Numbered from the whole stretch's first letter, positions 10,763 to 23,070 are shown. The stretch: DNA of 63,186 bases, filler included, from Platydemus manokwari (GCA_037951405.1; 6 parts of 6 records of this genome joined end to end with filler, not necessarily neighbours in it); one strand, 5' to 3'. Translations and numbers: made by a program. The notes: generated by a model not told the origin, from the letters alone.

Positions 10763-11031
10763 AACCATTGCTAATAACAATTGAAACTTGTAGCTCTACA
10801 TATAGAAAATACTATAAAAACGAAGTCATTGTTGATTTATATATATATAATTTAATAAATTACATTTATTTTAATTTCCTACTTGTTTAAATCTTTAACT
10901 AAAATTTAAATCGTGTAGCTTAATTTTAAATTGCATATTTTGTTAAATTAAGTTTTATTTAAGTTTTATTTGTTCTCTTTAACTTTATATTAATGTAATA
11001 TGGCTATTCTAATTTAAATTTATTGTAGGTA

Positions 11032-11889
11032 ATGGTTTCAGACTCAACAAAAATTTCCGTACTCGGTATAGTAGCTGGATTATCACCACTTTTCTCAATC
11101 TTTTTTCTAAGATTAATCGAATATGATCATTATTTCACTTTGATTGGATTGTCACTATTCGGTGTTTCATTATCTTATTTTTACATGATATTCAGTTATC
11201 CAGATAATCCTGAATTCAACAAAATGAATTTTATGAGTGCATTTTCTTTGGGATTCATTGCAACATTAGCAATTTTATTAACGATTAATAATCCATTTCA
11301 TTTCATTTTTGGTGTTTATATTATTCAGTTGTGCTTTTTTCATTGGTCAGAATTTTTTATAACTTCTATCAATAACCCCGGTGGCCTAAAAATTGATTTC
11401 TATATGTTAAATCATTCACGAGAATATAAAATTGCTCTTTTGTTAAGTCTCTTAGAATATTGGATTGAAAAGACTTATTTTCCGATGTTTTTTGTCAATT
11501 TCCGATGGCTCACATATATTGGATTAACAATGAGTATTTCGGGAGAAGTTTTGCGCAAAATTTCACTTTGGACTGCGGGTAAAAATTTCAACCATTATGT
11601 TGAAATTCAAAAACGTGCCGATCATGTTTTGGTTCGAAATGGTGTTTACAATTGGTTTCGGCATCCCTCATACGTGGGATGGTTTTATTTCAGTGTTGGA
11701 ACTCAGATTTCTTTGCTAAATCCAATATGCTTCGTTGGTTATACGATTGCTTCGTGGATGTTTTTTAGTGAACGGATTTATGAAGAGGAAAAATCTTTGA
11801 TACGATTTTTCGGTAAGGACTATATTGACTATCAGAATGAAGTTGGAACTGGATTGCCTTTCATTGAAGGTTATCTGATTGGGAAATAA
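11032..11889 (+). CDS. ICMT: Protein-S-isoprenylcysteine O-methyltransferase, single coding exon
   Basis: 285-aa multi-TM ORF with FFHWSEF, LNHSREY, AGKNFNH, HVLVRNGVYNWFRHPSYVGWF, RIYEEEKSLIRFFG..Y..Y...V.TGLPFI. AATAAA overlaps the stop. Confidence 0.95.
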   Translation: MVSDSTKISVLGIVAGLSPLFSIFFLRLIEYDHYFTLIGLSLFGVSLSYFYMIFSYPDNPEFNKMNFMSAFSLGFIATLAILLTINNPFHFIFGVYIIQLCFFHWSEFFITSINNPGGLKIDFYMLNHSREYKIALLLSLLEYWIEKTYFPMFFVNFRWLTYIGLTMSISGEVLRKISLWTAGKNFNHYVEIQKRADHVLVRNGVYNWFRHPSYVGWFYFSVGTQISLLNPICFVGYTIASWMFFSERIYEEEKSLIRFFGKDYIDYQNEVGTGLPFIEGYLIGK

Positions 11890-12122
11890 AAGTCAACGAT
11901 ACATGATTTCTATCACTAGTTTACAAGTATAATAACCGTGAAAAATGCCTTTATCGTGCTCATTAGTATTCACCAATGTTATTTTTATAATATACTGCTT
12001 ATCACATTGTTGTATTTTTCAATTTAAAATTTTCGAAATTTAATTATAAAATCGTTTTGTTTGAATAATCATCAAAGTGGCAGATTTTGAATTACTATTA
12101 GCATTTATCTTTGTAATTTTAG

Positions 12123-12767
12123 GCTGTTACTCTTCACTCCAGTCTTGGTGATATTAAGATTGAACTTTTTTGTTCAGAAACTCCTTTAGCTTCAGAGGTG
12201 ACTTTTTAGAATTGTTTTTCCTATTTGTTACATATTGATTCAGAATTTTTTAGCTCTTTGTGCATCGAACTATTATGATAATTGTATTTTCCACAGAAAC
12301 ATCAAAGGATTTATCATTCAAACTGGTGATCCCACAGGAACGGGAAAAGGAGGTCAAAGTATTTGGAAGAAGCCTTTTAAAGATGAATTTCACGAAAATC
12401 TTAGGGTACATGTTTGATGCGATTGATATGATTACCGTGTTGATATCGATTGTATTTGCAGCACAGCACTCGTGGTATTGTGTCAATGGCCAATTCTGGC
12501 AGTAATCTTAACCAATCACAATTCTTTATCACTTATTCCAAACAATCTATGCTTGATATGAAATATACCGTATTTGGCAAGTCCGATAATTTATGCTTAT
12601 GTTAAATGGATAGCAATTTGTGTTGTAGAGTAATTGATGGGTTTGAAGTACTTGACGAGATGGAGAAAGTGCCGGTTCAAGAGAAAAGCAACAAACCATT
12701 GCACGACATCAAGATTAATTCGATATCGATTCATGCCAATCCTTTTGCAGATGGATCGGTCGAATGA
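12123..12767 (+). CDS. PPIL3: Cyclophilin-type PPIase-like 3; exons 12123-12197, 12244-12405, 12462-12580, 12629-12767; initiator ATG not contiguous
   Basis: Spliced translation [17 protein letters not shown]...[35 protein letters not shown]...[11 protein letters not shown]...SQFFITY...[14 protein letters not shown]...IHANPFA. Introns of 46, 56 and 48 nt. Confidence 0.93.
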
Positions 12768-12851
12768 AGCAAAATCGCGTTCATAAAATTATCAATGTAA
12801 AAATAAATTTTCAAATCAATATCGTTTATTTGTATTTTAAATAATCGATTC

Positions 12852-13989
12852 TTATCTTGATTCGATCTTCGATGGTTGGTTGACAGAAATTTCTTTGACG
12901 TGTCCATATTTGTTAACTAAATAATTCTTCAGTTAAACAAAATCAAATATCGATTTAATTTGTACCTTCACCAGTCGTGTAGAAATCGTTCATCTCATTT
13001 ATCAGGCTTTTTTCGCAGTTGGCCATGATATCATCTTCTGATGGCGGATATCTCGCACATCTCTCGCCAATTTTCCTTTGTATCTGGAATCTTTCCGGAA
13101 ATGATGTTCGATCGTCTTCTCGCTTGGTGCGGTGATTAAATATCAAATGTTGGGCTTTTTGTTTGTTTAATGTCAAAGATGGTTCAGCAGCCAGCTCATG
13201 AATGCTGAGATTGTTTTTAATGGTTACCGCTGCTGTCGATCTAGCATGGAGGGGTAATCCTTGTTGATAGAGCGAGTCATTGAATGCATTCAAATCCATT
13301 TCCGAAATGATTTCGCTATGCAAAGTATTAAATGATCACTAGTTTAATCGTGCTTTATAATAATATAATGATGGCTTGTTTTGATTTATATTGTAAAATC
13401 ATCAAAATATTGATTATTTAATAATTGTATTTTTCATTATTAATTGAATCATAATTGCATGATGTATCTCGATTGATCACAAGAGTATTCAAAAAGCTGC
13501 TAACATCAATTTTAAAAAATTAAAATGTTGTCAGTGCCATTTTACAAATGATTAAAATATAATCAAAACCAACCCGCTACTAGTTAACAGCTGATAAATA
13601 TGTCTGAGTAGTAACACTGCTGCTCCTTCTTTCATATAGATTGTTCCATAAATAAAATTTTGAGGTACAGTCAATTTATATTTCTTGATAAACTGAAATG
13701 TCGTAGATAATAAAAAAAAATTGTAGATAAAAAACTAACATTTTCAATCAAATACCAATTTTTCATTTTCGACTCTATAGATTGTCCATTGTTAAAAAGT
13801 GTACTAGTTAATTCTTTTGGATAATATTTGTTGAATATTTCACCCACAATTATCCCATTTGAAATATCCCTATATAACTAAAATTAAAATATTGAATGAA
13901 AACTTTGCAAACCATTTGGGGTTTTGAATTTTTTTTGAGAGGTCTAAACATTGTAACCATTTTATGACTTCTCTGGGTAAATTTAACAT
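12852..13989 (-). CDS. SPATA4: Spermatogenesis-associated protein 4 (CH-like domain), five exons
   Basis: MLNLPREVIKWLQCLDLS...WDISNGIIVGEIF..YYP...FNNGQS...KMKNW...FIYGTIYMKEG...IYQLLT, then FNDSLYQQGLPLHARSTAAVTIKNNL, matching the SPATA4 pattern. Last exon ends in TAA at 12852. Convergent with PPIL3. Confidence 0.85.
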
Positions 13990-16900
13990 TTCGCTATTAA
14001 TCTAACCTAGCAACAGTTAGTTAAACAAAGATTGAATAAATTATTAAAATCGAGAAATAATTTTATTAAATATTAATTCCACCTTAATTAATATTTTACT
14101 TTTTTGTTCAATCTTTCCAATTATTATCTTATACGTTTAAATAAAATTATTTATTACAAGTTAACTGAAGTCTTTAAATACAATTCTCACTGAAATTATA
14201 TTGAACTTAATTGTTTAAGAAATAAGTATTTTGAGAATTCCATAAAAGTTTCTTAGAATTACTTCATTGAAATGAATATACTTAAAAAATTAATATGCAT
14301 ACAAATATATTTATCATAAATACAAGAATATCTCTAACAAAAAATTAATTAACATAAGTGTTTGACTAGGCTATGTTATCGATAACATAAGAGCTTTCTA
14401 TACTTCAATTATTTAAAAAATATATATTTTTAAGAACAAATCACACTAAAAACGATATCTTTTAAGACATAAATAGTTGCTGAATTATGTATAAATTAGC
14501 AGCTGGAATAGTCCTGCTTGATGAAATTCAACTTGTTCACTTTTGTCAGGATATCATTTCTATCAAATAGTTCTCAATTTAACACATCAATCTTCTTAAA
14601 TTTTATCTGAGACCTCTTATAATCAACTTGTATTAAGTCGTAAAAATTCCATCATCTTCTTAAATGATTACCACACTTACACTCAGATTGGTGTGCCATA
14701 ATTATTACCGATGGAATTATTCAATTGTTATTACTGCATTTGATTTTTAATTGATTTTATTATTCTGCTTGATTTATTTTGTTCGTCACTATTTTCAACA
14801 ACTTATATAAAATTGATTTAATAATTTATTAATATTTATTTTATTTGTAATCATTTTCACAGATTGATAATTACATAATCTATATAATAGTCTAGTAATT
14901 TGTTCATCATATTTTCAAATTTTAAATTTTATTTTTATTTGGATATTATCTTATTATTCAACATCATAGTCTTGTTTGGAGGTCAATGGTGCCCCCAGAA
15001 AATTGTTCTTCATAGAAAGAAAACTTTACTGAAAGAGTGATCATCAAACTTATAACTTGTAATTCGATAATGAAACCAGCACTTCAAGAAAGGTTCAAAG
15101 TCTCATGCGGATCTTGAAATTCCTGCAAACATTATACAAAAATGAAGAATTAATCGATAGGCTTATCAATGGCAACACTGGGATACCTAAATACTACACT
15201 TGTTTGACTTCAATTCAAATTCCGATCCAAGTCATTGGCCTATTGTACATAATTTTTTTCATAATAATTCTACTAACAAATAATTTTATATATGATTATG
15301 AGATATTATGTTATTGATGATGTAAATAGTTGGACAAATAATGGGAGTAGATTAGGGAGTTGAATACAATTGTTAACGGTATCACTGGGAACAAAATATG
15401 ATGCTCTGACAAGTCATTGATAAGTACACCGACATTATGTACGGAATCATATACACTAAAATAAGAGACTTCCAAAATGGTAACGTAAGTGACCACTTTG
15501 ATAGCTTTGCCTTATGTACAGTCATGTGCAAGACCTATATTCATGTTTAAATTTGATATTTTAAAAAAAGGAAGAGCTGCAAATATGCAACGGACACTGG
15601 AGAATCACGATAATAGATATCAGTAAAGGTAAAAAATTTTCACAGTACAAATAGTGAAGGAATTAAACACAAAATCCTGGAAATCAGCTGATGAAAGTTA
15701 TAAGAACTCAAAGAATATATAAAATTTAAATAGTGAGATTATTTACCAATTTGCAATCTATTAGAGTAACGCCACAAAAATATTAATAGTTTAAACTGCA
15801 GTAATTCCAAGAAAAATATTCATCGAAAAATTTATTGATCAGATAAGTGTAAAGTGGAATAATTCAAATGAATATTATTACATGATATATACCACTAGTT
15901 GCTTGAGTAAAATTAGTTGATTGCCGTCGACTGATTTCTACCTGTTTTCTATAGTTTTCAAAAAATCAATTTAATATTGTCCTGGGGAAAACCAGGCTTA
16001 AAAACTATAGAATCAAAATCATTTTTACTGACTTTAAAATTAGATAAGATTCTCCTAATTCGTGGAGGTCTCGAACCCGAACTTTTTATTTTTTCCTATT
16101 TGTTTTTTAGACTGAACACTGGAGCTAGTCGATTTGTACCTTGGCCTAATCGTTGATACTCTGCCCAGCTCTGCTCGAGGAATTGTTTTCTATTGAAAGT
16201 GGTATAAACAGTGGAGATACAGAAGCCAACACTTTGCTTCCTGGATGAGCGAGGAATAACTCTTGTTTTAGTAATAAAGTTTTGCATTCTGAAAGTTATA
16301 TAAATAAAAAAAACAATATTATCGAATCAAGCAGCAATAAAATTAAAAGCAATTAGTAAATCAGAAACTAATCAAGTTATCACAAAAATTAGGTGAAGAA
16401 TGTCAATGAAAGTAAAATGCGTCCATAGAAGAAAATAAGTTAATTTTTATCTGTAATTAAAAAATTTTTTTTATAAAATTAGTCTAATATAAATAAACAC
16501 AGAATTATTAATTAATTTGTTGATGTTGGTTTATATTTTATTATGGTTCGAGAAGGGTTTCGATCACACACTACACCAACAAGAAAATTATATGAAGGAC
16601 TCTGATTTAAATTAATAAATAAGCAGTGCGTACAAATTAGACTGAATGTAACATTGTCAAATTGGTTAAACAAAATTATATCAATAAATTTCTACTCACG
16701 ACATCCACTCAAATGTATATGATCTAATATCAATCAAGACGTTTATGTTTAAATAAATTCAATTTTTGAAATCGAAATAAGATATCGCGCAAAAATGAGA
16801 TAAAATTATTAATCAATGTAAGATGCAATAACTTGGACAATTTTCGAATAATTTTCATTATGTTGTAGATGAAAAAATATAATTACTGATAAGTATCAAC

Positions 16901-17469
16901 CACTTCTCCGTTCTCCGTCCTACAACTACTAATTCAGTATATTTCGCAGGAAAATCAATGTTCGCTGGAAATTCCAAATAATGATCGCTACAATCAAAGT
17001 TGTTTTGATATGATTAGCAGTAGATGTGATTCCAACGGGTATCCTTAATGAAAGTCTTTGTGTTAAGAAAATACAAGTTAAACTTTGTACTCTGTTTAGA
17101 GACATTGAAGAAACTGAGTGTACCAGAAGACTAAAAGTTTAAAGTTTTATAGAAAACTAACAAAAATGAAATTGATTAATAATAAACCACATATTTTAGG
17201 CTCCTAAGAAATTCATTTTCAAAAACATAACATTCTTACAACTAATGAAACTTAATTACTTTTGTTTTTTTTGCAACTAATCTTTTTGACATTCATTGTA
17301 TTATGTATCATAGTATAAATATAAAAATTGGGATGTTATTAAACAATTTGGCTTTTACCCAATGTTAATGTAATGATTTTTCACTCATTATTTAATAGTA
17401 AAATTTATTCTTAATCATATTTTAATAAAATTTTTACATAAAATTTAATTTTAGTTTAAAAAGAAAAAA

Positions 17470-18030
17470 ACATGTCCAACAACCTGTATATATTATGAAT
17501 CCTGGTATCATAGACATAAAAAAAATAAGAAATATCATTTTAAATATCAAATTTCTGTTTCCATTGTGATTATTACTTTTAGAGTTACTGAACTATAATT
17601 GCGATACAAAATAAGAATCAATTGTTTCAATCCTTCAACAACTTTAATACCATGTTTCGACACCTGCAACTATATTTGGACTCTTCAAAATGACCTTATC
17701 CATTTCCATGAGGCTGTTTTGACCTACAGTTATTTTTCTATACCTTGCTATTTTGCCTTGGCGTGAAATCTACAAACTTTGTATCTTGATAAATAATTTC
17801 AAATTCTCAGTTATATTTTGATAAAACTTTTTAAAAATTTGTGATTGCTGATTTGCTTAAGAAGATTATTTGATAATACACTTTTTGTGTGCATTAATAT
17901 ACCACAGATAAATAATATTTAGAATATCAAAAAGGAACAATCTCGAATTGTTGTAACAAGTTCCTATTCGAATTCCGAAAATTCTATTACATTTAAGGTA
18001 TCTCCACCTGTACGAGTTATTTGATTTGGA
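17470..18030 (-). mobile_element. Heavily decayed Merlin/IS1595-like transposase remnant (tentative)
   Basis: Fragments SYRWRYLKC, IRIGT, IIYLW and a C-terminal H.N.I..L.D-like stretch occur in Merlin order; many stops and frameshifts. Confidence 0.35.
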
Positions 18031-18497
18031 CGAAATCTTCATTATATTACCGCATTATTCTCATAATTCCTGAAAGTTTTTATAATATAACTCTCAAAAC
18101 CTTGGCATCGTTCAAATTACATCTAATGTTAAGAGTCCTCACTAATTTTCAATTAATTGCATTTTGATCTACTTTGATTAGTTTTTCAGATAATTGATTT
18201 TTAGTTTATTTTAAAGTTTCAGTGTATTTAATACTTGATTTCAAACCACTAAAATTCTTTTTAATTATTTAAATTAAAAACTCAAAATGTTTTTAATGAA
18301 TAATATTAAATAAACTATATAGATTATTTGAAATACATTTTATAAATTAAATTTTTTTTAGAACTTAACTTTAGCTAAAAATTTTATTAAAACCATTTTA
18401 ACACTAATTTTGAAAAATGAAAAATAAGGCTTTAATTTTATAGTTTGTTTAAATAATAATTTTAAGTCAAAATTTTTTATTATTTTTAACTTTTTAT

Positions 18498-21400
18498 ATG
18501 AGCTTTAAAACTGATTTTCCATCTATATTACCAGATTTTATTACACCCAGAAATTGCATATATTTCTTGATATCCAGAGAATATATTGAGCATGAATCAA
18601 ATATAAAAGTTTTGCTTGATGAAGAGGCACAATTTACGTTTGGTCTATTTCTCTTCAAAGCCATCAAGGTTGAATAAATAACGTCAATCTTGAAATTACT
18701 TTTTTCTTCATAGGATTCTACGATCGATCTATTTAAATATCTAAAAGAAAATGATAATGCTTTTAAGAAAAAATTAAATTTTCTAGTTATTAAGAAGTTA
18801 ATAAAATTTAATTAATGAATTTAATTAACTAATTCTGTTCTTTTTTCTTTAGGATCGAGTCAATCGTCAACAGTTTAAATGATTTTATTTCCTATTTTGA
18901 TATTTTAGAACTTGTTAATGGTAATGTGTTAAGTTCATTTCATGAACATGGTGATGTTATCGGCAATGAAAGCCGAGGGAAAATTTGTAAATATAGTTTA
19001 GTTGGTAAATTTTATCAATCTTTTTGGGTTGTGTTTTTATTTTAAATAAGGAGCGTTTATGAAAAAATTCTGTCTCGCATTCCAATCATTATCAATGGAA
19101 AAGATTGTTATGTTTATCGAGGGGTTTCGACAACTTCTCGAATCACACGATATTCTTCCTCGATCAAATAAAAAGTAAATTTTTTTACCTCCGAAAATCA
19201 ATCAAATTGATTCCGTCAATCATTTTTCCAGACTTAGCAAGTCAAGTGATTTAATGTTTAAACGATCGATGACATTGAAACAGGAACGTTTGAGTGAAGA
19301 TCAAGTTCGTTGGTCATTGGAAAATATGCATAAAGAAATCGAGAACGTTCTCTATTCGCCCGCCAATAAGAGTAACTGCCGACCCGTTAATGAATTGCGT
19401 CGCGACCTAGCTAAATACAAACAAATGTATCCCGATATTTCGGAATCTTTCTTCCTCGACAATCTGTTGATGATGCACAAGAAGGATTTCGCAGTGATCG
19501 AAAATGATGTCCAAATGAATTATCCAGCTAAATTTCTCAGTGCCGACGAGTCAGGGAATAAAGATCTCTTCTCTCTGCACGATTCCAATAAAGATAACAA
19601 CAAGAAGCTCATTCTATTTAAAAACAGCCAAATTCGTCAGAAACTTAGTGAGGTCAGCCTGAATAGCGCGATAACGTTTTCATCGATGGGTTTCAAGTAA
19701 GTATTTCTGTTTATATTATTGGTATTGATGTTGATGGGTTTGGTATTGATGGTATTTGAGTTGATAGGGTGGCATTTTGGGTTATGTTGATTCCATAGGG
19801 ATTGATATTGATGGTATTGTGGTGGATATTGATGTTATCGAGGTTACTATTGATGGTATTGGGGTTGATGTTGATGTTAATAAGGTTATTATTAATGGTA
19901 TTAGGGTTGATATCGATGTTAACGAGATTATTATTAATGGTATTGGGGTTGATATCGATGTTAACGAGGTTATTATTAATGGTATTGGGTTTGATATCGA
20001 TGTTAACGAGGTTATTAGTGATGGTATTGGGGTTGATATCGAAGTTAACGAGGTTATTATTGATGGTATTGGGGTTGATGTTAATAAGGTTATTATTAAT
20101 GGTATTGGGGTTGATATCGATGTTAACTAGGTTATTATTAATGGTATTGGGTTTGATATCGATGTTAACTAGGTTATTATTAATGGTATTGGGGTTGATA
20201 TCGATGTTAACTAGGTTATTATTGATGGTATTGGGGTTGATATCGATGTTAACGAGGTTACTATTGATGGTATTGGGGTTGATATCGATGTTAACTAGGT
20301 TATTATTAATGGTATTGGGGTTGATATCGATGTTAACTAGGTTATTATTGATAGTATTAGTTATGATTTTGAAGTCATTGATGTTTATCAGTGTAGAACT
20401 ACATTTATCGCCACTGTTCTACGTCAATATCGATTTATGCTTGTTAGTATCGATGGCTCCATGATGATTGTTGAAAGCTGGCACTTATTGATTGGTACCG
20501 CATATCAATACAAGTTGTTGAAATGATTATTTGTGTAAAATTGTGAGCAAGTATTGCGTATCAAAGTGACTAGCTGGGATTGTTGTTATATGGGTATTGC
20601 AGGTATCGCGGTATCGTCAAGCCTATATTATCAACATCATCGATATTCACAACCAAATGATATCACAATCAATAATTATTATCACATATTATTTCCAGGG
20701 ATGAAGCGTTGCTCCACTACAAAGATGCAATGTTTAATGCTAAATTGTCGAGGAAATCAGATTTGATTGCAGAAGTTGGCGTAGGTTTTTCTAGATTTGT
20801 CCTTTTATCATTTCGGGGGGGTGGTTTTGAGAGGATTGAAGTGATAAATATTGCGCGATCATCAATATATATCGCTTGTCATCTCATTTTCTCATCTTAC
20901 GGGGATAATATTCGATAATCGATCAGTATTGACATCGATATTTAGAGTGTTGGGAACTCACTGATGCCAATCAATGATAATCCAAATGGGGCATTCTATT
21001 CATTGATCAATGGCAACATGAATGATGTAAGCGACACGTGGTTGTTAATTATTGATTATTTTATCACCATAATTACAGAAAACAGCTCTGGGAAATATTC
21101 GAGACTTCCTCTTGTTATCTTTGCATAGCAACCGCAACAGTTTGCAAGAGTACGATAATTGATTGATTGAATTTGTTGCTATTGGTTACGTGTATGTGTG
21201 TGTAATGATTTTTGTTATTCAGATTGTTGCTGCACTATTTCAGCTCCCCTGCTCCACAGAGAAGAGAAATCACACCGATTTGTCTCATTTATTTGTCAAT
21301 CCTTTTTAGATCATTTGGATTTGAGTGAGTGTTGCCATGGATATTTGATAGATGTATTTGATCAATTTATTTATGATTTACAGGGCCATGGCCAATACTT

Positions 21401-22542
21401 ATCTCATGATTGCAGCCTGCACCGAGTCGTTAAAGCACACCAAAAATCATCATGATGTGCTAGTAGAGGTGTTTTCACAACTGATTTCCAATTATTCCAC
21501 CACGGTAATCTTTATGATTGATTAATGTATTGGATTTAATCGATATTTATCAGCTGGTATTTTTAATCAATACCTGCTCTTACTTTATTGAAACAATATC
21601 ACCATGGTTATTGATGTATCAAATTAAATCAGTGATTGTTACAGTATTGTTATCGATATCTATTATCTCAATAAATCAATAATTATTACAGTATTGTCAT
21701 CAATATCTATTATCTCATAAATCAATAATTATTACAGTATTGTCATCAATATATATTATCTCAATAAATCAATAATTATTACAGTATTGCCATCAATATA
21801 TATTATCTCAATAAATCGATAATTATTATTTTATTACCAAATCGCTGTAAGTACTCTCGTGATATTAATTGCTTTATAAATATGAGGTCACTATTTTAAT
21901 TTTGTTATTTTTCATTGTGATGCGATAAGTATCGCGTGATTGCTGATTTGATAATCAATAAATTAATTATTTACCGATATCTCACCTTATAGGGACGATT
22001 TGAGAAAGCATTCAACTTTTTCAAGGTCTTAGAAACGGTCGGCGAAGGCGTTCTCTGTTCGAATAATCAGCTGCAATCCAGTTTGCTCCAATCTTTATTT
22101 AGCCATTCCTTGATGCGATTGGATTTCTCACGAGCAAATCGATGCTTGGAGAAATTGCAGCAAGTATCACTCGCGGAGTACGGATTGAGGTATCACAGTA
22201 TTGGAGATGTTGGGTATTGATTATTGATTGTTCTCGTTGCCAAACAGGAAGGTGCAGATCTTATTCGTAGAGGATAACAATGCAGCAGCAATCAGACTCG
22301 GTAATCACATCATCTCATTCGCTGTCAAGAAGCGCGAATTTCTCGTTTTTAATCACGTGAGTATCAGCAATGGATGCCCAACAATGTCATCTCTAATAGC
22401 CCATCACAAATCGAGCGGCATTGTCGACCACTTGAACGAAAAAGCGTTTCTCAACGATTTACCATCTCTCGATGATAACAGCAGTCAGAATTGGGGCAGT
22501 CGGGATTGGGCGATCTATGAGTGTCGATGTCGTTGGTTGATG
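18498..22542 (+). CDS. ANAPC5: Anaphase-promoting complex subunit 5, divergent, 3' end missing at the spacer
   Basis: ATG 18498. Spliced blocks DFITPRN, KYSLVGAFMKKFCLAFQSLSMEKI, LRRDLAKYKQMYPDISESFFL, VSLNSAITFSSMGFK|DEALLHYKDAMFNAK and EYGLR|KVQILF parallel the APC5 motifs VTP, SVVGLFLR..ILAY.KLSF, P.FAEAHYL, AALNLA.LH.RFG and YRKA. Confidence 0.75.
19790..20350. repeat. 42-bp minisatellite, about 13 units, in an ANAPC5 intron
   Basis: Unit GATATCGATGTTAAC(G/T)AGGTTATTATTAATGGTATTGGGGTT; gives the 14-aa periodic ORFs in the track. Confidence 0.92.
21627..21825. repeat. About 47-bp tandem repeat, about 4 units, intronic
   Basis: Unit AATCAATAATTATTACAGTATTGTCATCAATAT(A/C)TATTATCTCAATA. Confidence 0.85.
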
Positions 22543-23070
22543 GTGAGATTAGTTTATTATTATTATTATATTAATTATTAATCAATCAATAAATCAATTA
22601 TAATTAATAAATAAAGTTTATTATAATTAATTAACAATAATCATTAAATAAAATCAATAATTAATCAATAAATNNNNNNNNNNNNNNNNNNNNNNNNNNN
22701 NNNNNNNNNNNNNNNNNTTAATTAATTAANNNNNNNNNNNNNNNNNNNNNNNNNNNNNNNNNNNNNNNNNNNNTTTAATGTGGGACAACAGAATATTATT
22801 AGTAGTATTATTATTAGGAGGATTATTATTATGATTATTATTATTATTGTTATAATAATAATTATTGTTATTATTATTATGGTTATTATCAATTACAATC
22901 CGTATAATTACAATTACTTTTTATTATTGTTCTTAATTTAAGACAACGATATGCTCAGATGATTTATAAAATCTTTATCAACGTAACATGACTGCTATCA
23001 TTTATGCCAACATATTCTCAAATTCTGACACCAGCTCTATTTAATCTATAATTTATTATTTTATTTTAAG

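Follow-up and report, generated by a model that had tools for sequence, protein, structure and literature searches.

A flatworm ICMT-PPIL3 gene pair in which PPIL3 lacks a genomic start codon and probably takes its AUG from a spliced leader

How is a gene translated when the genome does not encode its start codon? This question is raised by the gene PPIL3 in the stretch of DNA analyzed here (63,186 nucleotides (nt), referred to as the window), where it follows ICMT (protein-S-isoprenylcysteine O-methyltransferase) on the plus strand of an AT-rich piece (10763-22673, 29.5% G+C). A preliminary description of this DNA had proposed that a spliced leader (SL) brings the missing AUG, and that the two genes form a dicistronic unit. 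The first part of this proposal has gained strong comparative and published support, and an AUG supplied by the SL very probably opens the PPIL3 open reading frame (ORF) in the window. The second part fits the distance between the genes and the conservation of the pair, although an internal promoter is possible; the joint statement, that is, an SL-derived AUG at PPIL3 together with a polycistronic precursor, appears to us somewhat more probable than its negation. The mechanism as such is not new, since SL-AUG initiation in flatworms has been known since 2006.

The refined PPIL3 gene model, the exons of which were searched singly, consists of four exons separated by three GT-AG introns of 46, 56, and 48 nt. 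Exon A (12123-12197, plus strand) encodes codons 2-26, starting with GCT GTT ACT (AVTLH...), contains no start codon, and shows 72-84% identity to relatives in tblastn searches. Exon B (12244-12405, plus strand; Pfam Pro_isomerase, E=1.4e-14) is 94% identical to its counterparts in L001 and L007, two of the related loci described below. Exon C (12462-12580, plus strand; Pro_isomerase, E=1e-11) ends in phase 2, and exon D (12629-12767, plus strand), which also matches Pro_isomerase, closes with the stop codon TGA at 12765-12767; a likely poly(A) signal of the gene, AATAAA, was located by sequence scan at 12802-12807 (plus strand). The domain PF00160 is detected on exons B, C, and D, and the region of exons B and C in a relative is 67-78% identical to named PPIL3 proteins. 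Immediately before codon 2 stands an acceptor with a pyrimidine tract and AG (12108-12122, plus strand; ...gtaattttag), the last three nucleotides of which (12120-12122) are an in-frame TAG. Two statements of the preliminary description thus hold: homology to PPIL3 begins at codon 2 (12123), right after an in-frame TAG, and the gene has no ATG of its own, the earliest in-frame Met that the genome encodes being near residue 88 of the genome-encoded protein, within exon C. Because of this position of the Met, no genomic AUG is available for the translation of exons A and B.

The absence of a genomic AUG and the in-frame TAG directly upstream would also suit a gene that is not translated from exon A at all, i.e., a decaying copy, or a gene in which translation begins at a codon other than AUG or at a Met further downstream. 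However, none of the four exons is disrupted, the introns follow the GT-AG rule, a stop codon is present, the same structure is found in all relatives, and initiation at the exon C Met would cost the protein more than half of its cyclophilin domain. Furthermore, the differences in exon A between species are strongly concentrated at third positions and among synonymous changes. For example, the window and the related locus L002 differ at 4, 0, and 18 sites in the first, second, and third codon positions, respectively, with 14 synonymous versus 4 nonsynonymous codon changes. By this measure, exon A is under purifying selection in the AVTLH frame and evolves as a coding sequence, and we consider the absence of translation from exon A to be highly improbable.

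A simple solution would be trans-splicing of an SL onto the acceptor between 12122 and 12123. The terminal AUG of the leader would then be the PPIL3 initiator, giving Met-Ala-Val-Thr-Leu-His, which is the universal N-terminus of PPIL3. Indeed, full-length PPIL3 proteins from transcripts and from other phyla begin with M-[AS]-VTLH (P0121, P0136), so that an added AUG restores the N-terminus of the family, and the PPIL3 of Schistocephalus (a sequence-database protein, present only as a UniRef entry) starts with MAVTLH. All reported flatworm SLs end in ATG (PMC12582326, PMC7346339), and the passage of PMC9851317 that cites Cheng 2006 puts the number of S. mansoni cDNAs that depend on the leader AUG at more than 40; these three papers agree with the earlier statement that flatworm leaders end in an AUG that can be used as the initiator. 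The window locus resembles this class of flatworm genes (Cheng et al. 2006, J Biol Chem 281:733, as summarized in PMC9851317 and PMC12582326) in that the acceptor (tttag before GCT) lies directly before the first conserved codon of the ORF, in frame and without a genomic in-frame AUG, and in that the N-terminus is restored only by an AUG from outside. Two aspects are new: all sampled lineages with a split gene have retained this dependence, and in Macrostomum it seems to have become fixed in the genome as an SL-derived ATG. The supplements of MBE 2025 mention neither ICMT nor PPIL3. For the species of the window itself, we infer SL addition at PPIL3.

The upstream gene, ICMT, is a single ORF and exon at 11032-11889 (plus strand, 285 amino acids). 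It carries the domain PF04140 (E=1.5e-28) and resembles animal ICMTs over its full length, with identities of 65% and 60% to P0001 and P0002, the two relatives whose contigs are L001 and L002, and approximately 50% to animal ICMTs; the search with this protein returned 208 homologues, and all the named ones are ICMT. A pyrimidine-rich tract with AG (11013-11028, plus strand) forms a putative (trans-)splice acceptor, the acceptor-like ttattgtag ending at 11028, and is separated from the ATG by only three bases, GTA, in frame. The in-frame acceptor one codon before the ICMT ATG, and the GTTTCA directly after this ATG (11032-11034), had both been described previously and are present as described. 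The AG-NNN-ATG spacing is shared by the window, L001, and L002, which are all three members of this clade with a complete 5' end of ICMT. Accordingly spaced, ICMT would probably also be given the SL, at 11028/11029, and the AUG of the leader would be in frame with the genomic one (AUG GUA AUG).

The comparison with relatives shows how widely this layout is distributed. PPIL3 is located right behind ICMT in L001 (JGI sample 3300031718, 30% G+C) and L002 (Logan assembly, 47% G+C), and L007, which was added by a metagenome scan, has ICMT followed by PPIL3 in the same layout. A pyrimidine tract and AG directly before PPIL3 codon 2 are present in all four members of the window clade (window, L001, L002, and L007). 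The same-strand order of ICMT and then PPIL3 exon A is also found in S. rodhaini, S. mansoni, T. szidati, H. americana, Spirometra, and E. multilocularis; the gene order is thus kept from the window clade to trematodes and cestodes. In all loci outside this clade in which the bases before exon A were read (S. mansoni, S. rodhaini, Spirometra, and E. multilocularis), exon A starts with GC[AG] GT[ATG], encoding A V, directly after the AG. Each of the seven loci scanned (six species) has a pyrimidine tract and AG right in front of codon 2, none has an in-frame ATG before the first stop upstream of exon A, and E. multilocularis has the same junction of AG and codon 2 as these seven loci. The junction is kept in every related locus examined; therefore, the pattern is not due to chance. 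Judged from these loci, exon A is translated in the AVTLH frame throughout the phylum, and is devoid of a genomic AUG in every lineage that keeps the split gene. In the maximum-likelihood tree of ICMT, the window, L001, and L002 form a clade (100/100) that is sister to cestodes and trematodes (Neodermata) with a support of 99/91, and the best named PPIL3 matches of L002 come from Schistocephalus, Spirometra, and Schistosoma. Because of this sister placement and the flatworm matches, we assign the window clade to flatworms outside the parasitic Neodermata.

Additional evidence comes from Macrostomum lignano, in which PPIL3 is intronless and has no ICMT within 10 kb. The 10 nt before PPIL3 codon 2 are identical to the last 10 nt of the 35-nt SL of this species (PMC8629364), and 15 of the last 16 nt of the leader are matched, at L005:9984-10000 and L004:9984-10000 (NIVC01000380.1 and NIVC01000084.1, respectively). 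Among random 18-mers of the M. lignano locus, only a fraction of 4e-5 match the SL tail in at least 15 of 18 positions. The M. lignano gene looks like a retrocopy of an SL-AUG mRNA, in which the leader AUG was joined directly to GCA GTC and then fixed in the genome. The public model of this gene is marked as partial and begins at codon 2. Other genome-based models of PPIL3 fail in various ways as well: most neodermatan models are 143 amino acids long, and those read begin at an internal Met of exon A; the RefSeq/v5 model of S. mansoni begins at an intronic ATG and lacks exon A; the S. rodhaini model is a chimera with ICMT exon 1 joined in frame to exon A; and the S. haematobium gene bears the name "GPN-loop GTPase 2, variant 4". 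The last two models, like those of T. szidati and H. americana that use the ICMT start codon (see below), probably arose in annotation as work-arounds for the absent AUG.

Published data on S. mansoni bear on the same question. Smp_080150 (PPIL3) has 29,955.5 SL-trapping counts and is listed inside the dicistron Smp_165320-Smp_080150 (Boroni 2018, PMC5832876 Table S3), and the interval Smp_080130-Smp_165320 is flagged as a polycistron (Protasio 2012, PMC3254664 Table S2), in which Smp_080130 may be ICMT. We considered and rejected the identification of Smp_165320 as ICMT; its coordinates point to an MTPAP-like gene nested in PPIL3. This gene is a single-exon gene of 452 amino acids on the same strand, located in the PPIL3 intron between exons A and B (L087:7926-9284; NC_031498.1 20848206-20849564), and the S. 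mansoni ICMT (P0241) is the gene just before PPIL3 exon A, the acceptor of which is at about 20849982 of NC_031498.1. Read from these coordinates, the published dicistron Smp_165320-Smp_080150 is in fact a nested arrangement. An MTPAP-like gene is nested in the PPIL3 intron also in S. rodhaini, T. szidati, H. americana, Spirometra, and E. multilocularis (L003, L086, L091, L092, and L093). The window locus and the S. mansoni polycistrons share an orthologous neighborhood, in which ICMT immediately precedes PPIL3 exon A on the same strand. The two differ in the intron between exons A and B, which harbors the MTPAP-like gene in Neodermata, whereas the window has a plain intron of 46 nt and no MTPAP-like gene anywhere in the piece. 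The SL-trapping counts provide support, not proof, for SL addition at exon A of the S. mansoni PPIL3. A Logan contig (L088:1-2155, SRR22936562) carries the final 30 nt of exon A followed by a GT donor, a retained intron with a 504-amino-acid MTPAP-like ORF, exons B-D joined together, and AATAAA, and has the appearance of a multi-gene RNA, partly processed, from another, parasitic flatworm. It should also be noted that in E. multilocularis (L093:6655-15319, LN902841.1) ICMT, PPIL3 with the nested MTPAP-like gene, and a GPN-loop GTPase gene are all on one strand, and the spacers that separate them measure 335 and 165 nt. PPIL3 is followed by a GPN gene in S. rodhaini, S. mansoni, T. szidati, and Spirometra as well. 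The ORF that comes next in the window is encoded by the other strand.

A separate question is whether ICMT and PPIL3 are transcribed together. Most likely, the two genes would be transcribed into one precursor, which is then split by 3'-end formation of ICMT and SL addition to PPIL3. We regard polycistronic transcription of the pair in the window, i.e., a flatworm-type operon, as moderately well supported, and we infer a single ICMT-PPIL3 precursor RNA. The spacer between the ICMT stop codon and the PPIL3 acceptor (11890-12122, plus strand) is 233 nt long, with both genes on the plus strand, which is within the limit of 300 bp used for operons in PMC12582326; the other published limits are 200 bp (Boroni 2018, PMC5832876) and 1 kb for M. 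lignano (PMC8629364). In the relatives, the spacers between ICMT and PPIL3 are 282, 269, 214, 574, and 335 nt long. The operons of M. lignano (PMC8629364) provide a comparison with another free-living flatworm that has one SL ending in ATG, and its intercistronic distance is typically about 100 bp; however, in M. lignano, PPIL3 lacks introns, no ICMT is linked to it within 10 kb, and its ATG is genomic and follows the SL tail. As in the SL2-type operons of C. elegans, the same-strand spacer is short, and the downstream gene would take the leader at an acceptor near the coding start. Nematode leaders do not end in AUG and, therefore, supply no start codon. Flatworms also differ from C. elegans in that they show no specialized operon leader (PMC12582326, PMC3254664).

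One of the related loci may represent the RNA itself. In L007, which comes from JGI Ga0247628, the 3' half of ICMT, the spacer, and PPIL3 (748-1293) are joined, and the introns between exons A and B and between exons B and C, which are present in L001, are missing; sibling samples of L007 contain mRNA-sized intronless ICMT contigs. L007 may, thus, be an RNA contig spanning both genes. The remaining intron of L007, 57 nt long, is in frame and contains no stop codon. The identity of L007 to L001 is only 72-80%, so intron loss is possible as well.

The spacer and the region upstream of ICMT contain conserved elements. The 9-mer TTGTTTAAA is located at 10883-10891 (plus strand), 137 nt upstream of the ICMT acceptor, and a copy with one mismatch, TTGTTTGAA, is located at 12057-12065 (plus strand), 57 nt before the PPIL3 acceptor. 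Exact plus-strand copies of TTGTTTAAA are present in five of the seven 5' flanks of ICMT and PPIL3 in the window clade (window 10883-10891, L001:131-139 and 1303-1311, L002:75-83, and L007:644-652), at distances of 37-142 nt before the acceptors of the two genes; five flanks were reached by 1 of 300 dinucleotide shuffles. Where the window spacer has the one-mismatch copy, L001 (1303) and L007 (644) have the exact motif. Apart from this 9-mer, there is no alignable conservation upstream of ICMT. Within the spacer, the noncoding blocks ATGCCTTT..TGCTCATT and TTATTTTTATAATA (11945-11992, plus strand) align with L001:1185-1240 and L007:536-600; the first reads ATGCCTT..TGCTCAT and the second TTATTTTT[AG]TAATA across the window, L001, and L007, the latter being TATA-like in the window (TTATTTTTATAATA). 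The blocks and TTGTTTAAA could be 3'-end signals, trans-splicing signals, or pieces of a TATA-like promoter. Neither AATAAA nor ATTAAA is present in the 233-nt spacer. Two other interpretations of the conserved spacer were rejected: a small ORF (11945-12043, 32 amino acids, with a similar start in L001) is interrupted by a stop at codon 3 in L007, with indels that are not multiples of three, and the predicted structure of a conserved RNA reaches only -2.2 kcal/mol.

Several observations weigh against the view that an SL supplies the AUG to PPIL3 within a shared precursor. The terminal AUG of the leader of the window species is assumed from the phylum, and an Rfam scan of the window piece returned no matches and no SL RNA gene. 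Paragonimus has no exon A within 3.3 kb after ICMT. The S. mansoni counts are ambiguous between the acceptors of exons A and B, because the tables contain no acceptor coordinates, and the v5 model lacks exon A; the counts may, therefore, belong to the exon B acceptor. The conserved spacer blocks and the TTGTTTAAA motif, the latter also upstream of ICMT, could be promoter elements. Finally, the ICMT ATG is directly followed by GT not only in the window but also in T. szidati, H. americana, E. multilocularis, and Spirometra, and this last observation opens a route to a start codon in cis.

In the cis route, the ICMT ATG (11032-11034, followed by GTTTCA) would function as a coding exon of 3 nt joined to 12123, or an exon ending in ATG would lie beyond the upstream edge of the piece; either way, ICMT would be nested in the first intron of PPIL3. 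Public 161-amino-acid PPIL3 models of T. szidati (L091:10001-10003) and H. americana (L092:6001-6003) do use the ICMT ATG as a 3-nt exon, the S. rodhaini model splices ICMT exon 1 in frame to exon A, and flatworm acceptors are often common to cis- and trans-splicing (PMC12582326). However, the donor is absent from L001 (ATG TTA), L002 (ATG ATT), and S. mansoni and S. rodhaini (ATG GGT), and yet these loci have the same junction of AG and codon 2. Because these four loci have no GT after the ICMT ATG, the cis route is not general. The preliminary description had offered this route as an alternative; it is indeed used in two schistosomatid gene models, but fails as a general solution. The spacer does not provide a donor either: the 233 nt back to the ICMT stop contain three ATGs, none of them followed by GT, in agreement with the preliminary description, and there is no ATG followed by GT that is conserved across the spacers of the relatives. 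Moreover, the route requires an intron of 1088 nt, compared to 46-56 nt for the other PPIL3 introns, the Macrostomum retrocopy has the SL tail and not an ICMT-derived exon at codon 2, and the Val at position 2 may simply be ancestral. Cis-splicing may yield a side product in some species, including that of the window, but it cannot be the conserved solution, and as the source of the PPIL3 AUG in the window we consider it improbable.

The other alternative accepts the SL as the source of the AUG and dispenses with the operon: a compact promoter within the 233-nt spacer would serve PPIL3 separately, and the leader would take the place of a short outron. The spacer blocks kept in the window, L001, and L007, including the TATA-like TTATTTTTATAATA, are consistent with this possibility, as is the presence of TTGTTTAAA upstream of the acceptors of both genes, which is expected if each gene has similar control elements; in addition, most SL-trans-spliced genes of flatworms are monocistronic (PMC5832876). 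Conversely, the same motifs could equally be signals for 3'-end formation or trans-splicing, the spacer is inside the published operon thresholds, and the S. mansoni cluster is present in published polycistron tables. Unless the two genes share a transcript or their regulation, it is difficult to see why the same-strand linkage would extend from free-living flatworms to trematodes and cestodes. A separate PPIL3 promoter is a less likely alternative than the shared precursor, although it deserves more weight than the cis route.

The same-strand pair ends at PPIL3. The next ORF (12955-13323, minus strand, 122 amino acids) is convergent to PPIL3 and has neither a Pfam match nor a match in the related loci. 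Further along the piece, a 42-nt tandem repeat (13.3 copies, 90% match) at 19806-20358 is open in two plus-strand frames (ORFs 19777-20130 and 19802-20464). The ORF at 19254-19700, upstream of this repeat, has no Pfam match, and another tandem repeat, with a unit of 47 nt (4.4 copies, 93% match), is located at 21625-21828.

The SL-AUG initiation of flatworms, flatworm operons, and the presence of the S. mansoni counterpart in polycistron tables are established. What the present analysis adds is the junction of AG and codon 2 kept in all sampled lineages with a split gene, the Macrostomum retrocopy, and the nested gene in Neodermata. In practical terms, genes without a genomic start codon are systematically misannotated in flatworms, and the models of PPIL3 are truncated (143 amino acids), chimeric with ICMT or GPN2, or partial. 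The window locus, whose introns are tiny and which has no nested gene, is a clean and compact test case, useful for studies of SL-AUG initiation in a free-living flatworm, of the operon status of conserved gene pairs, and of intercistronic cis-signals.

As a tentative suggestion, which is rather doubtful at present, the dependence of PPIL3 on the leader AUG and its place behind ICMT may be as old as the common ancestor of the window clade and the parasitic flatworms, and the AUG dependence may even date back to the split from Macrostomum. Under this scenario, there would be three derived states, proposed here with equal caution: (i) a plain dicistron in the window clade; (ii) an MTPAP-like gene nested in the first intron of PPIL3 in Neodermata; and (iii) an SL-capturing retrocopy in Macrostomum. 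If this scenario is true, the ICMT-PPIL3 pair would be among the oldest conserved SL-dependent gene arrangements in animals, and the TTGTTTAAA motif together with the ATGCCTT/TGCTCAT blocks would represent the first candidates for the cis-signals that direct intercistronic processing in flatworms.

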